Below, piece after piece: positions 1 to 9,515 of a DNA stretch of 9,515 nucleotides. Each line of letters starts with the position of its first letter. Positions within the stretch are counted from its first letter, which is position 1. The stretch is taken from NCBI RefSeq assembly GCF_006345805.1, contig NW_021827951.1:1-9515 (forward strand), read 5' to 3'. The position numbers and the translations under genes are program-made. The notes below the pieces were generated by a model. That model saw nothing but the letters and a program-made list of their open reading frames with translations. It was not told the DNA's origin and did not search any database. Source of the DNA: Octopus sinensis. Taxonomy: Eukaryota.

Positions 1-950
1 TTCGTGTTGTTGCTATTTTCGTTGTTTGGTTTTCTATATTGAATATTGTTGATAACAACCGTAAGTTTAACACTTTATATTTGTTTTATAGAAAAAGGTA
101 TTGTGTTGTTGATTGATACAATAGATAGACTAAAGTACACTATGTACGTATGTGTCTAACTTATTTCCAAATATCTTCACTTCCCTTCACTAAACATGTC
201 TAATCACCTCTCCAGCATCAGCAGAATGCCATTGTTATCTTTTGTCTTTATTTCAATGAAATCTTTGAGGAAGAATTTATTCAAAAACAAAACATAAAAT
301 AATACCCCACCCCTACCAAAATAATGCATGATATACATCAAATCAGAAAGCGAGTGATTACGTCACATCCTGTTCCGGTACGTATACACATTGTATTGAA
401 ATGGATTGATCTTGCTCATACGTCAGTCATGATAGAATTGTGAACTAAGAAATAAAGTCACACTTCGCTTACATGCTACAACAGCATGAAATAAACAAAC
501 TTTTGTATCCTTATTCCTTTAACTATTGAACTCCGTTCTCATTTCTGTAGTTCATTAACGTCACTTTGATTTAAATTTAATTATTCAAATACATATGAAT
601 CCAATGATAATTCCTCCGACAAATTTTCTCTTTCTATTTGTAACAGGATTTCGTTTACATACATAGGGAAAGATTACAAATACTTACTCCTCATCCGGAT
701 GTCTATCTGTTCATGCTTATAACAAAAGGAATATTTAGGAAAATAGATTGCGTGTCTTGTACAGAAAAATTTCAATATCGAAAGAACAAAAAGAATATTT
801 TATTTCGTTATTCAATATATTTATTTATTTTTGCAGAAACCAAAAATGTCACTAATAGAACGATCACCTGGCAAGCAACAGGTGTGGGATTCATTATTCA
901 AAGAGAAATCTGTTCTTTCCTATTAAGCTAGCACTTCAGACCACATGTAG

Positions 951-1316: not shown

Positions 1317-1580
1317 GGCGGTGAGCTGGCAGAACTGTTAGCATGCTGGGCAAAATGCTTAGCAGCATTTCATCTATCTTTACGTTCTGAGTTCAAATTC
1401 CGAGAAGGTTCGCTTTGCTTTTCATCCTGCCAGGGTCGATAAAATAAGTACCAGTGAAACACTCGGGTCGATGTTATCTACTTGTCCTCTCCCGCAAAGC
1501 ATCAGACCTTGTGTCTTTACTAGAACTGATTATTATTATTATTATTATTATTTTATTATTATTATTATTATCATCATCAT
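1317..1580 (+). mobile_element. tRNA-derived SINE, copy 2, with (TTA)n/(TCA)n tail
   Basis: Head GGCGGTGAGCTGGCAG, B-box-like GAGTTCAAATTCC at 1389-1401, AAGTACCAGTGAAACACTCGGGTCGATG, and a (TTA)n tail at ~1529-1570 changing to TCA. Aligns by eye along its length to 1085-1310. Confidence 0.85.
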
Positions 1581-2010: not shown

Positions 2011-2325
2011 TTGTTGTTTGTTCCTTCTCGAGCCATGCCTGGCTCATGATGAGGCCGGTTTTCCGGTTACATTGGCGTATAGGTTGTCCACCTGAACTGG
2101 GACGGGACGCCGGTCCGTCGCAGGTCAGCGGCTAGGGACAGGAGGAAAAAGTGTGAGGAAGTAGTGGTGAAAGAGTCAGCAGAATTTCGCCATTACCTTC
2201 TGCCGGAGCCGCGTGAAGCTTAGGCGTTTCGCTCTTAAACACACACATCACCTTGTCTGAGATTCGAACCCACGATCCCTCGACCGCGAGTCCGTTGTTG
2301 TAACCACTAGGCCATCTGCATCCAC
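2011..2325 (-). mobile_element. Full-length tRNA(Arg)-like SINE
   Basis: The minus strand begins GTGGATGCAGATGGCCTAGTGGTT (A box TGGCCTAGTGG), has an anticodon-arm-like GGACTCGCGGTC (TCG) and a B box GGTTCGAATCT. A GC-rich body follows, ending in an ACAAACAACAA tail at 2011-2021. Confidence 0.85.
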
Positions 2326-2645
2326 TAGTAGTATTATAACTACCAATAAAACCATGACAACAACAACAATAACGACAACAGCAGCGAATTTCTTTTTAAA
2401 CGAGAACTCAGCCGCGGAATGATGAGTACGACTGAGTTTATGTGACTAAATATATTTGAATAATTTATTGATTAACAACCTAATTAAAATTGCTATCGTA
2501 CGTTGATGATTTGTGCAATGTAATTATAGTTAACTAAGAAGGATTCCCCTGCCATGAATATAATAAAAGAAATAGAAGAAAAATTAAACAAAAGAAGGTG
2601 AGAATGAATGGGGCGAAACGAAAGATGTAAGAAAAGAATACAGGA

Positions 2646-3300
2646 AGTGTGTGTGTGCATGTGTGTGCGTATGTGTGTGTGTGTGTGCGTGTGTGTGTAC
2701 GTGTGTATGTACGTGTGTGTATGTGTGTTTGTGTATGCGTGTGTGTGTATTGCACGTAAATCAGCGTGTGGTTGTGTACATGTGTGTAGTTGTGAATTTT
2801 TTTGTCTGCATGTGTTTGTTTGTTTGTCTGTATGTAGGTATGTGTTGTTGTGTGTGTGTTTGTGTGTGTGTGTGTAACCGCCGAGTAAGTGGGTTGCGTG
2901 GCTTTGTATGGAAAGTGTGTAGTCGTCTGGATATATATTTGTGTGTATGCGTGTGTGCGAATGTGTGTGCGCGCGTATGTGTATGCGTGTGTGTGAATGT
3001 GTGTGTATGTGTTTGTGTGTGTGTGTGTGTATCTTGAGAATAAGTGTGTTGTGTGGTTATGTATGAAAGTGTGTAGACGCCTAGGTATGTGTGTGTATGT
3101 GAATGTGTGTTTGTCTATGTGGAAGCATGTGTGTGAATGTGTGTATGTGTGTGTGTGTGTGTATCTTCCGAGTGAGTGTCTTGTGTGGTCTTGTATGAAA
3201 GTGAGGGTTGTCTAACTATAGGTATGTGTGTGTGTGTGTGTGCGTGTGTGTGAATGTGTGTGTGTGTTGTGCATGCGTGTGTGCTTGTAGGTGTGTGCAG
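2646..3300. repeat. Imperfect (GT)n microsatellite tract with embedded ~60 bp higher-order repeat cores
   Basis: GT dinucleotide runs directly visible, interrupted by related cores at ~2746, 2874, 3029 and 3161. Confidence 0.95.
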
Positions 3301-3359
3301 CAGAAAGAACAAAACACAACTGTGTCGAAAAGACGGAGCAAAAACAATTAAAAGAGAAA

Positions 3360-3495
3360 TATATGACGGTGATGGCGTTGATGATGATGATGATAGCATC
3401 GACGACGGCAATGATAATGACAACGAAGAGGATGGCGATGAACGATGAGAACGAGGAGGATGAGGGTGAGAAGGTGAGTCATGTTGATGAATGAA
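3360..3495. repeat. Degenerate (GAT/GAC)n trinucleotide repeat
   Basis: GATGATGATGAT, GACGACG, GATAATGAC and GAGGAGGATGAG runs. Confidence 0.8.
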
Positions 3496-3516
3496 CAAAC
3501 AAAAAGATAGGAAAGA

Positions 3517-3616
3517 ATGGAAGGCGCGAAAGGAAGAAGGAGAAGGAGAAAGAGTAGTAGAAGAAGAAGAAGAAGAAGAAGAAGAAGAAGAAGAAGAAGA
3601 AGCAGAAGACGAAGAT
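3517..3616. repeat. (GAA)n polypurine tract including perfect (GAA)14 at 3560-3601
   Basis: Directly visible. Confidence 0.95.
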
Positions 3617-3642
3617 GGATAATAATAATATTAATAATAATG

Positions 3643-3704
<62 letters not shown>

Positions 3705-3826
3705 GATAATAATAATAATAATAATAAAATAATAATAATAATAATAATAATAACAATAACAAAATAATAATAATAAAATATAATAATAATAAATAATAAT
3801 AAAATATAATAATAATAATAATAATA
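3617..3826. repeat. (TAA)n/(TGA)n trinucleotide microsatellite
   Basis: Directly visible long AAT run with GAT and AAC variants. Confidence 0.95.
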
Positions 3827-4051
3827 GGAAGGAGAAGGAAAAGAGAAGTGGGAAGCGGAAAAAAGAGTGAGGAGGAGGAGGAAGAGCAGAAGGAGGCGGT
3901 GGAGAAGATGAATGAAAAAGGAAGAGAAAAAATAAGAGGAGGAAGAAGAAAATTAGGAAGAAAGGAAGATGAATGAAAGGAAGAAGAGGAAGTAAGAGGT
4001 TAAGAAGAAGGAGAAGAAGAAGAAGAAGTAGAAGAACAAAAAGAGGAAGGA

Positions 4052-4097
<46 letters not shown>

Positions 4098-4335
4098 GAG
4101 AAGCAGGAGAAGCAGGAGGAGAATGAGGAGAAGCAGGAGGAGAAGGAGGTGAAGAAGGAGAAGAAGAAGAAGAAGAAGGAGAAGAAGAGAAGGATAAGTA
4201 GGAGAAGAAGAAGAGGAGGAAAAAAGGGAGAAGGAGGAGAAGAAGAAGAAGAAAGAGGTGGAGCAAGGAGAAGAACAACAACAAGAGGAAGAACAAGAAC
4301 AAGAATAACAAGAACAAGAAGGAAAGGAGAGAGCA
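3827..4335. repeat. (GAA/GGA)n polypurine low-complexity tract grading into (GAA/CAA)
   Basis: Almost entirely A/G on the + strand; CAA variants appear from ~4270. Confidence 0.95.
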
Positions 4336-4534
4336 AGAAGTTGAAGAATGAAACGAACATAGGTAGAGAATGTCAACTGAAATAGTTTGATTAATTTAAA
4401 CATTTTCGAAATTGATCAAGGAGAAAATTAGGAATCAAGAAATTAAAAATAAACAAAAACAACAACGAAAACAATAACAACAAAATAACAAACCAATAAA
4501 AATAAAAAAACTGAAAGGGAATAAACAATAGGAG

Positions 4535-4572
4535 CAGCAGCAGCAGCAGCAACAACAACAACAACAACGACG
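4535..4572. repeat. Compound (CAG)5(CAA)6(CGA)n microsatellite
   Basis: CAG x5 at 4535-4549, CAA x6 at 4550-4567, then CGA. Confidence 0.9.
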
Positions 4573-4619
4573 AGAAGAAAGAATAAGGGAAAAACAAAAG
4601 AAATTCCATCTTTGTATGT

Positions 4620-4837
4620 TTGTGTTATATATACACATACATAGATACATACATAATACGTACATATATGCATATATATATATATATATACACTCATAAA
4701 ACGTTTATATATATATATATATATATATACATACATATATCTACGTATATATAGACGCATAATATATGTATAAATATACGCATATATATATACATACATA
4801 TACCTTTATATGTGTGTGTGTATATATGTATATATAC

Positions 4838-4879
<42 letters not shown>

Positions 4880-5030
4880 ATATATGCATGCATCTATCTC
4901 TCTCTCTTACCTCTCTCTCTTTCTCACGGATATATATATATATATTATATATTACAAATATATACAAATAGATACAAATAATATATATTATATATATATA
5001 CATACACACACACAAACGTGCGTGTGTGCA
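4620..5030. repeat. Imperfect (TA)n tract with (CA), (GT) and (CT) islands; perfect (AT)18 at 4841-4876
   Basis: Directly visible. Confidence 0.95.
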
Positions 5031-5755: not shown

Positions 5756-6176
5756 GTTAGAACAATAAAAACACTGCCTACTTCTTTTAATTACCACGTG
5801 GTTCTTACTATCTAGTAATTATCCACTACTACTATTAATAATTTTTACAAATACTCAAATAAAATAATTAACTCTGCAATCCATCAAAAAGCCATGTGAC
5901 TCTATTGTATGTAGAATCAATAAAAAGTCAAACAAAGAATGGTATTCTATAAATAACCACTCTGCAGCTAGTCAAGCTTAAGAAACACTGATGCTGCTGG
6001 ATTTTCCCCTAACAATCAGGTGAAGAAAGCAGCTCATGGTTTACTATTATTACTAAGCGTAATTCTAACTAATAGTGGAGGTAAATTCCCAGTTGAACAA
6101 TGGCAGAATTATATACCCTGAATAGATCGTACTAATAATGTTTTTCCTTCGGGTTCGAAGATGACCATTGACATCA

Positions 6177-6233
6177 TTTAGTGGTACTAATGATCGTACT
6201 AATACTTTGGTGGTACTAATGATCGTACTAATA
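6177..6233 (+). repeat. 29 bp tandem repeat, 2 copies (left arm of palindrome)
   Basis: TTTAGTGGTACTAATGATCGTACTAATA (6177-6204) followed by CTTTGGTGGTACTAATGATCGTACTAATA (6205-6233). Confidence 0.95.
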
Positions 6234-6751
6234 ATGCATAAATCGTTGCGTATAAATATGCGTATAAATATCCGAAACACGTGTCGGATGATTATTATGA
6301 ATAAAGTAAATGGAAATAATCATAAAGTTTGAATGGTCAAATTAATCATTCCTTTTATTCTCAATATTATACATCACACTCTAAGTTGCCTAGGAATAAA
6401 ATGTAACATCGGATGAGAACTAATGGAAGTTTACCAGGAAAACAGAAAACGCAGCATCTGAAGGAACCAGTTTTGGCATTTTACTCAGAGAAATTCGGTA
6501 TCTGAGTAAAATGCCAAAACGGTTCCTTCAGATGCTGCGTTTTCTGTTTTCCTGGTAAACTTCCATTAGTTCTCATCCGATGTTACATTTTATTCTAGGC
6601 ACTTAGAGTGTGATGTATAATATTGAAATAAGAGGAATGATTAATTGACCATTCAAACTTTATGATTATTTCCATTTACTTTATTCATAATAATCATCCG
6701 ACACGTGTTTCGGATATTTATACGCATATTTATACGCAACGATTTATGCAT

Positions 6752-6837
6752 TATTAGTACGATCATTAGTACCACCAAAGTATTAGTACGATCATTAGTA
6801 CCACCAAAGTATTAGTACGATCATTAGTACCACCAAA
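6752..6837 (-). repeat. 29 bp tandem repeat, 3 copies (right arm of palindrome)
   Basis: TATTAGTACGATCATTAGTACCACCAAAG at 6752-6780 and 6781-6809, plus 28 of 29 nt at 6810-6837. Confidence 0.95.
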
Positions 6838-7049
6838 TGATGTCAATGGTCATCTTCGAACCCGAAGGAAAAACATTATTAGTACGATCTATTCAGGGTA
6901 TATAATTGACTCTAAATAGTGTGTTTGTTATGGTATTTGCAAAGGGAGGTCATCCCTCCCTCGTCAACTTAAGTGATACGCACGGACTGCAGTTTCTAGG
7001 TATTGACCTGTCGTCGGCGTACGACAATCACCGGTTTTCGATGCAGGAA

Positions 7050-7086
7050 AGATAGATAGCTGGCTAGCTAGCTAGATAGATAGATA
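7050..7086. repeat. Degenerate (GATA/GCTA)n tetranucleotide repeat
   Basis: AGATAGATAGCTGGCTAGCTAGCTAGATAGATAGATA. Confidence 0.8.
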
Positions 7087-7344
7087 AAAGTTAGATACGT
7101 TTCAACCTTATCTATATGAGTGGGTGGGAAAGCATAAGAAGGGAACTCAACACATTTATATGAATCAAAACAGTTTCATTCAAAGTTCGTGCCACAAGCT
7201 TGTATGTCCGTATACATGCATAAACGCACCAACTCCTCACTCCCTACTTTATTCTCCATCAGAGAAGTGCTTTCCCACCTAAGTCCTCACACTTACCTCG
7301 TCCCGATTTTTTCCTCCTCCCTTGCATATTTTTCTATCTCATTT

Positions 7345-7672
7345 CATTTATGCTGACCATGGGATTGCATCTAGGAAGTTACCCTCCCAGGCACAAGTTC
7401 GGGCAAAGTTGTTTATGGAAGACCAGCAGTCGCCCATGCATACCGGCCTCCCCTCTCCACGCCACCAGTGTTATCCAAGGGAAAGGCAAAAAGGGGCTGA
7501 TACAGCTTGGTACCTGTGACGTTGCAACTCATTTCTACAGCTGAGTGAACTGGAGCAACGTGAAAAAAAGTGTCTTGCTCAAGAACACAACTCGCAGCCC
7601 GGTCCGGGATTCGAACTCACAACCTCACGACCGTAAGCTCGACGCTCTAACCACTGAGCCATGCACCTTCAC
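7345..7672 (-). mobile_element. tRNA-derived CORE-type SINE
   Basis: The minus strand begins GTGAAGGTGCATGGCTCAGTGGTTAGAGC (A box TGGCTCAGTGG) and has a B box AGTTCGAATCC. Then comes GTTGTGTTCTTGAGCAAGACACTT...CAGTTCACTCAGCTGTAGAAATGAG (+7528-7591), resembling the MIR/CORE domain (GTGACCTTGGGCAAGTCACTT...CAGTTTCCTCATCTGTAAAATGG). The 3' boundary is approximate. Confidence 0.8.
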
Positions 7673-7708
7673 ACACACACACACCACACACACACACCAC
7701 ACACACAC

Positions 7709-7760
<52 letters not shown>

Positions 7761-7770
7761 TATATATATA
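7671..7770. repeat. Compound (CA)n-(TA)n microsatellite abutting the SINE head
   Basis: Directly visible. Confidence 0.95.
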
Positions 7771-8467
7771 AGGACAGATATTAGTCTCATATCATGGCTT
7801 CGTGGAATCTAATGGAGTTCGGTCAATACAGTTTTCAACCAGCACTGAAAATGGCTATATCCAGTTTAGAATAAAATAACTGGACATAATAGACGTAATG
7901 TATGCGTGTGTCTATGTGTATGTGTGTTAACAGACAGTTGTTTATTTTTATCTATGGCTGGTGTATATTTTATGTATGTTCATTTTCGTTTTGTGCTGAG
8001 TTATTTGTATTGCTTCCACCAGAAACCCCCAATTTATTATCATAGGATGACGTTCTGTAGAATATAATTTCATTATCTGGTATTGTTCTTCTATCTGGTT
8101 TCATTATATAGCTATATGGTGTGCATTGAAATTGCACCTTATTATAAGTGTCTGCTAAGCTGATAGAAAAGTGGTGTAATTTTATGTGATATATTATAGA
8201 GAATGCTGCAGTGGCAGTTGAGAAGTTTACAACTTTCACTTTCACTATTGGATTCAGAAATAACATTTGTCATTAATAGATTGTTCTAGGATTTACAAGC
8301 TTTTGGTCTGTTATTGAAATACATTGAGATTCATATACGTCTATGGAAGCATTGAAACAACACTTTCACAAGCATAAAATCTTATCAACAAACACACTAT
8401 TTAGAAAAGTATGTAGGTACCCCTCCACAAACGAAGCACTTTTTTTCTTTTATAATTCTTCAGGAAA

Positions 8468-8957: not shown

Positions 8958-9085
8958 AGTGTGTGTATGCGTGTATGTGATTATACGTATTGTAAATGTG
9001 CTTCTAAACATGTGTTCGTATGTGCATTGAATACGTGTGTGTGTGTGTGTGTGTGTGTAAGTGTGTGTGTGTGTGCGTGCGTGTT
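8958..9085. repeat. Imperfect (GT)n microsatellite
   Basis: Directly visible; purest at ~9035-9082. Confidence 0.9.
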
Positions 9086-9465
9086 ATGCAAATAAAATAT
9101 AATATGAAACGAGGTAAGTCAACAACAAAAACAAACGGAGCGTATTAGGTTTACGCTCAGGAAATCGGAAAAAAAAATAGAAGCAAAAGTCTTTTACGTT
9201 TCGTGTAAACATTCTTGTGAAAGACACAAAAGAATAGACAAAGAGAGAAGAAACCAAAAAACAAAAAAAAAATAGAAAAGAAGAGAAAACTGATAAAAGA
9301 GCGCACGTGTTCAGGCATGTTGGTAGAGTAGGGAGGGGTGAAATGAGAGACAAAACATATATATAAGGAAATGAAAGTTAGTAAAGTTAGTGAAGTCATG
9401 GCGGATTGGTGTGACAAAGATCAACAACAGAGCACAGTAAGATCCAAGACTGATCATAAATAAAC

Positions 9466-9515
<50 letters not shown>
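9466..9515. repeat. Perfect (ATCT)n tetranucleotide repeat running off the window edge
   Basis: 12.5 perfect ATCT units. Confidence 0.97.

Follow-up and report, generated by a model that had tools for sequence, protein, structure and literature searches.

The Tc4 element of C. elegans reportedly consists of two long, near-identical inverted arms on either side of a very short unique centre, and its transposase is said to come from a variant copy. [quoted passage not shown] 1991, cited in PMC11071193). Consensus sequences of Tc4 have been deposited for no groups other than nematodes and arthropods, to which elements from tardigrades are to be added (PMC11071193). Among the foldback elements of Drosophila, the tandem repeat within the TIR of Tetris has a 37-bp stretch in common with the terminal domain, and the TIR tandem repeats of Galileo contain additional transposase-binding sites (PMC4079207). 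Foldback structures are considered to have originated independently in different superfamilies (Marzo et al. 2008, cited in PMC4079207).

Of the octopus papers that a literature search listed, none contains the word 'foldback'. The repeats of O. vulgaris include 238 TIR families, among them 49 of unclassified TIR type and 65 of MITE type; recently active TIR transposons are abundant in this genome, the 49 unclassified families being listed with its recently active repeats, and its recently active elements include piggyBac families (PMC13282606). The 9.5-kb stretch of DNA analysed here, referred to as the window, contains a long palindrome of foldback shape.

The window and its palindrome

The window is repeat-rich, non-coding DNA of eukaryotic type, and microsatellites fill much of the region 2640-5010. 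Dense microsatellites are located at 2640-3300, 3500-4400, 3620-3830, 4610-5010, 7050-7097, 7670-7770, 9030-9080, and 9465-9515. They comprise (GT)n with higher-order units of about 130-155 nt, (GAA/GAG)n, (AAT)n, (AT)n/(ATAC)n, (AGAT)n, (AC)n-(AT)n, and (TATC)n, and produce strong local GC and AT skews. Two adjacent copies of a SINE, 75% identical to each other, are present at 1086-1315 and 1318-1547 (+), followed by a partial copy at about 1660-1745. We take this repeat to be an octopus SINE. It matches four places at 72-88% in a 24.3-kb O. vulgaris locus around rhodopsin (OX597836.1), which had been found via a rhodopsin query and was used for comparison; the window therefore comes from an octopod or from another cephalopod with this SINE family. 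In addition, tRNA-derived SINE-like heads with the B-box-like sequences GGTTCGAATCC and GATTCGAACCC were detected at about 7340-7670 (-) and about 2230-2330 (-). These heads gave neither a tRNA call with ARAGORN nor a match in the 24.3-kb O. vulgaris locus, and they probably represent a second SINE family.

Positions 6107-6907 form a near-perfect palindrome of 801 nt with a GC content of 32.7%. An earlier, sequence-only reading had placed its arms at 6107-6489 and 6501-6907 around a loop of 11 nt, and these coordinates are exact. In the repeat finder, the arms appeared as collinear inverted blocks tiling 6107-6907. The left arm (6107-6489, +) measures 383 nt in the alignment; the right arm (6501-6907, -) measures 407 nt and corresponds to the left arm in reverse-complement form plus one 29-nt unit. 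The unpaired loop GAAATTCGGTA (6490-6500), to which, as to the whole palindrome, no strand is assigned, includes an AATT at 6492-6495. When 6090-6495 is aligned globally with the reverse complement of 6496-6925, no break occurs between the outer AATT and the turn CTCAGA/TCTGAG. Folded as single-stranded DNA, 6107-6907 yields one hairpin of -430.5 kcal/mol, compared to -69.8 +/- 5.7 kcal/mol for dinucleotide shuffles (z = -63). The terminal 26-mer occurs in the window solely at the two ends of the palindrome, with 0 occurrences expected.

The symmetry ends at AATT (6107-6110 and 6904-6907), and the flanks outside of it are neither complementary to each other nor direct repeats, their local alignment score being 14 against a shuffle mean of 14.9. 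A longer duplication of the flanks was rejected on this value at shuffle level. The abrupt stop at AATT on both sides, which had been noticed before, is correctly positioned, but this tetranucleotide is self-complementary and may represent a palindromic target-site duplication (TSD) rather than a part of the arm. The absence of a coding middle was confirmed as well, since no frame in 6107-6907 contains a protein domain, and the palindrome as a whole has no coding capacity. The palindrome is far beyond chance, and its structure is real, bounded and non-coding.

From the outside to the inside, the arms are composed as follows. The outer AATT (6107-6110, partner 6904-6907; no strand) is either a candidate self-complementary TSD of 4 bp or belongs to the inverted repeat as its final 4 nt. 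TATATA (6110-6115, partner 6899-6904; no strand) would be an alternative TSD of 6, 4 or 2 bp if the repeat proper extends from CCCTG (6116) to CAGGG (6898). The terminal domain CCCTGAATA-GATCGTACTAATAATG (6116-6140, +; mirror 6874-6898) contains the first copy of the 16-mer GATCGTACTAATAATG, starting at 6125. A 36-nt spacer with the small internal hairpin CTTCGGGTTCGAAG (6147-6160, +; mirror 6854-6867) is followed by a tandem array of the 29-nt unit TTTRGTGGTACTAATGATCGTACTAATAC, each unit of which carries two GTACTAAT motifs. TRF detected 2.0 copies of this unit in the left arm (6177-6233, +) and 3.0 perfect copies in the right arm (6752-6837, -). A second exact copy of the 16-mer (6221-6236) closes the array, and this reiteration within the tandem array matches the layout of Tetris and Galileo. 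Further inside, a 12-nt sequence, TGCGTATAAATA, is repeated twice in tandem (6247-6270, +; mirror 6715-6738), next to the imperfect palindrome CCGAAACACGTGTCGG around CACGTG (6272-6287, +; mirror 6698-6713). The innermost 200-230 nt or so of each arm, up to the loop, are unique sequence.

The motif GTACTAAT is present five times in the left arm and seven times in the right, with one uniform orientation towards the end. All of these copies are confined to the outer 130-160 nt or so, the first one being located 22 nt from the boundary, and the motif is absent from the rest of the 9.5-kb window, for which our arithmetic gives an expectation of about 0.3. The sequence-only reading had referred to foldback elements with arms made of internal tandem repeats. 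Such arrays are indeed found, and in unequal copy number, but they account for only about 82 of the 383 nt on the left and about 111 of the 407 nt on the right, which is approximately 20-27% per arm. As a side observation, the motif GATCGTACTAATAAT (6125-6139 and repeats) shares a 15-nt identity with the 18-bp att core ACCGATCGTACTAATAAT found in Psychrobacillus phage Perkons (PMC13245101), the sole match when sequence strings were looked for in the literature. No further similarity to phages was detected, and this match is almost certainly due to chance.

Apart from the 29-nt unit, the arms differ by two transitions (A/G at 6180 and T/C at 6354) and five single-base insertions/deletions (6339-41, 6360, 6386-7, 6393-4, and 6469). 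All five of the latter (6339-6469 compared to 6520-6650) shorten the right arm, and three of them are located in short homopolymers. Of the seven small differences, six fall into the inner 151 nt of an arm measuring 383 nt (binomial P = 0.017), in its non-repetitive part (6335-6489, +), a distribution in keeping with constraint on the functional outer ends or with their homogenisation. With two substitutions over approximately 383 nt, the divergence is 0.5%. In the calibration applied to O. vulgaris repeats, a JC distance of 0.09 equals 25 My (PMC13282606). On this scale, the arms would have separated roughly 0.7 My ago, assuming that they were identical at birth and that no gene conversion has occurred. 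The ratio of insertions/deletions to substitutions, 5:2, is atypical for natural divergence, and the single-nucleotide differences in length may reflect consensus or polishing errors, or slippage, rather than ordinary divergence.

Target site, coding capacity and copies

Direct repeats of 2-11 bp were searched at every boundary from 6103 to 6118. Even with one mismatch tolerated, none of 7-11 bp was detected at any of these boundaries. The candidates for a TSD are all self-complementary: AATT if the repeat starts with ATATACCCTG, TATATA, TATA or TA if it starts with CCCTG, and AT. Being self-complementary, they are indistinguishable from an extension of the palindrome, and one copy cannot decide between the two. 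A similar difficulty was encountered with ATon of Aedes, whose self-complementary sites were mis-called until many copies and empty sites had been aligned (PMC3422177).

Several superfamilies could be judged by their target sites and termini. The TSD of 8-10 bp made by FB and Tetris, which are related to Mutator, is missing; long inverted repeats, also characteristic of these elements, do form the bulk of the palindrome (383 + 407 of 801 nt). Likewise, no TSD of 7-8 bp as in Galileo and the P superfamily is present. The termini of hAT elements follow the consensus YARNG...CNYTR. CCCTG and CAGGG are opposite in orientation to such ends, and the 8-bp TSD of hAT is absent. A likeness to piggyBac is given by the CCC...GGG ends that result if the repeat proper starts at 6116, and CCCTGAATAGAT presumably resembles a piggyBac terminus of the CCCTAGAAAGAT type. 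Unlike in piggyBac, however, the defining TTAA duplication is missing at both ends, and it is TATA that adjoins CCC and GGG (6116/6898). Neither CTNA nor TNAG flanks the palindrome, as a CTNAG target of the Tc4 type would demand. A TA duplication of the Tc1/mariner kind is compatible at several registers, the ends being situated in (TA)n. To our knowledge, AATT is the insertion target of no described superfamily. Being 801 nt long, lacking a Pfam domain in any ORF and consisting of inverted repeats over the full length, the element is short, non-coding and equipped with TIRs, as are MITEs. The lack of a 7-11 bp TSD argues against the superfamilies to which most described foldback elements belong. 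The testable criteria thus place the element outside FB/Mutator, P, hAT, and piggyBac, while Tc1/mariner and superfamilies with a 4-bp TSD remain compatible.

None of the ORFs in the window contains a Pfam domain above the cut-off. No protein match was obtained with a 71-aa ORF running outwards across the left terminus or with the concatenated reading frames of SINE and palindrome, and look-ups of exact products had no entry. A stop-free frame at 644-928 (+) showed a weak match below the cut-off to the first beta-propeller of RSE1/DDB1/CPSF1 (E = 0.003, 17 compared to 26.9 bits), which is probably noise but could be the remnant of an exon. In Rfam, no family reached its gathering score, the best being mir-8517 at the centre of the palindrome with 33.4 of 70 bits, and ARAGORN predicted no tRNA genes in the window.

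Within the 9.5-kb window, blastn and a scan allowing three mismatches revealed neither a further copy nor a solo end or a terminus related to it. An exact match of 19 nt, CTAAATAGTGTGTTTGTT-, exists between 6911-6929 (+), just to the right of the palindrome, and 8387-8405 (-), 1.5 kb downstream. With E = 1e-4 for a search inside the window, the match is limited to these 19 nt. The 24.3-kb O. vulgaris locus (OX597836.1) contains neither a copy of the palindrome or its motifs nor a comparable near-perfect palindrome, and no sequence matching the palindrome is included in the supplementary data on O. vulgaris repeats (PMC13282606). Searches with the terminal 25-mer in viral and prokaryotic genome contigs, with a 24-mer of the tandem unit in metagenome and prokaryotic genome contigs, and with a gapped double-motif pattern in viral contigs all yielded 0 matches, and distant blastn of one arm against phages and plasmids gave none. 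Since a control pattern from the SINE also had 0 matches in viral and metagenome contigs, these two collections contain no detectable host DNA, and the absence of the element there is uninformative with respect to its copy number.

Origin of the palindrome

On balance, it appears somewhat more likely than not that the palindrome is one inserted copy of a non-autonomous, foldback-type cut-and-paste DNA transposon with very long TIRs. This reading is preferred because of sharp ends between unique flanks and because the motif cluster lies at these ends, the 16-mer is reiterated, the subrepeats are unequal in number, and the outer parts of the arms are spared from small differences. The abundance of recently active TIR transposons in the host was also counted in its favour. 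The single visible copy, the lack of an unambiguous TSD and of a known autonomous partner, and the excess of insertions/deletions were counted against it. A recently active non-autonomous DNA transposon had already been suggested by the sequence-only reading, and the bounded, non-coding structure, the near-identical arms and the subterminal architecture are in line with this suggestion; one visible copy and no TSD of 7-11 bp speak against it. Subterminal repeats and their unequal number in the two arms are typical of the architecture of foldback or long-TIR non-autonomous transposons.

According to the proposed plan, each arm would begin with a short terminal domain (..ATATACCCTGAATA + GATCGTACTAATAATG), continue with a cluster of GTACTAAT and GATCGTACTAATA in the same orientation, partly amplified as the 29-nt tandem array, and end in unique sequence. 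The repeated motifs are putative binding sites for a transposase encoded elsewhere, by which the element may have been mobilised in trans. The palindrome over the whole length would have been generated when one end was copied back on itself, and not by a simple internal deletion; this could have come about through template switching at the CTCAGA/TCTGAG turn, while a gap was being repaired or during replication. Insertion would have taken place into an AT-rich, self-complementary target, of which AATT or a short (TA)n may have been duplicated.

A different origin, less likely but a serious alternative, would be a one-off local inverted duplication that is not mobile. A nascent strand would have turned back in the course of replication or of the repair of a break, copied about 390 nt of a resident left arm and returned to the template via AATT microhomology, leaving 6496-6907 as the inserted copy. 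That one copy is visible in the window, that a conventional TSD is absent and that the arms are very young would be consistent with such an event, and the AATT of the outer ends (6107, 6904) recurs in the loop (6492-6495), which a switch back by microhomology would predict. Inverted duplications arising by template switching or fold-back priming also resemble the palindrome in their short spacer and in the possible AATT microhomology between the turn and the outer junction. However, the occurrence of AATT in an AT-rich loop of 11 nt is weak evidence, with a probability that we estimate at about 0.1-0.15, and five filler bases (CGGTA) are needed. Inverted duplications of this kind are single-locus events without a reason to end just outside a cluster of subterminal motifs. 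The position of the boundary about 20 nt outside the dense motif cluster is left unexplained by the duplication, and so is the sparing of the outer 230 nt by small differences (P = 0.017). An artefact of assembly or sequencing, be it a foldback chimeric long read or mis-polishing, is very improbable. The small differences do look like errors of a long-read consensus, as five of the seven are single-nucleotide insertions/deletions, three in short homopolymers, with one arm shortened throughout. Polishing errors would account for these differences but not for the palindrome, and a chimera would run on as the reverse complement of the incoming flank, whereas both flanks are unique, so that two precise switches would be needed. 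The clean difference of one 29-nt unit suggests two separately assembled arms. We know of no adapter that the loop GAAATTCGGTA resembles.

A hairpin-RNA gene, in which about 390 bp of perfect dsRNA would feed Dicer (endo-siRNA) or ADAR, is improbable as well, and it would be compatible with an origin from a transposon. The single uninterrupted hairpin of the fold and the weak scores resembling miRNA precursors at the centre (mir-8517, 33 bits compared to a gathering score of 70) point in this direction, and hairpins derived from MITEs are known to give rise to small-RNA genes (PMC1784062, PMC3495686). Against this stands the absence of an Rfam family at threshold, and the same fold is expected from any long palindrome. 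Three other candidates were rejected: the junction of terminal hairpins of a parvovirus or densovirus, as there is no Y- or T-shaped centre and no viral coding sequence nearby; two head-to-head SINE insertions, as the arms have no similarity to the SINEs of the window; and a prokaryotic or phage origin, as the window is eukaryotic DNA rich in SSRs and SINEs.

Returning to the transposon copy preferred here, its most far-reaching version would make the palindrome the first recognised member of a cephalopod foldback family that duplicates AATT, is mobilised in trans via GTACTAAT and produces hairpin transcripts of about 390 bp feeding siRNA or ADAR pathways; to this combination we attach very little probability. 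If a family exists, the mobilome of cephalopods, which is poorly curated, would gain a non-autonomous element of the foldback type, and the GTACTAAT sites would offer a handle on the transposase. Near-perfect palindromes with short spacers are hotspots of breakage and rearrangement and potential sources of long dsRNA, which makes them somewhat interesting in a lineage whose ADAR editing is extensive. If the palindrome is a single local duplication, it would merely be an anecdote on palindrome formation.

Relation to described elements

The elements commonly grouped as MITEs or palindromic non-autonomous TIR elements, such as Made1 (hsa-mir-548) and ATon of Aedes, are similar to the palindrome in being small, AT-rich, non-coding and able to form hairpins. 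MITEs are defined by high copy number. They differ in that their TIRs are usually 10-30 nt long, whereas here the whole element is inverted repeat, and with 801 nt the palindrome is at their upper size limit. As with ATon, the TSD is difficult to assign where the insertion site is self-complementary (PMC3422177).

More features are in common with the foldback elements of Drosophila, that is, FB, the Mutator-like Tetris and Galileo of the P superfamily. In these elements, too, long inverted arms open with a terminal domain, a portion of which is repeated in the tandem subrepeats behind it, the number of subrepeats is unequal between the arms, many copies are non-coding, and the middle is short (PMC4079207). 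In contrast to them, tandem repeats constitute a minority of the arm in the palindrome, a TSD of 7-10 bp is missing, and the middle comprises only 11 nt. Tc4 resembles the palindrome in folding back over nearly its whole length around a tiny centre; its own palindromic target is duplicated only in part, so that bases of the target look like a continuation of the inverted repeat. The insertion site of Tc4 is CTNAG, however, with TNA as the duplicated part (PMC11071193), and the palindrome has no CTNA or TNAG flanks.

In its architecture, the palindrome is nearest to Tc4 with respect to the whole-length fold-back and to the Drosophila foldback group with respect to the subrepeats of the arms. 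Given the presumed independent origins of foldback structures, a new lineage of such a shape would add a member and not a new kind. The palindrome is most likely a young copy of a foldback-like non-autonomous transposon in an octopus-type genome, a putatively mobile element of a known kind.
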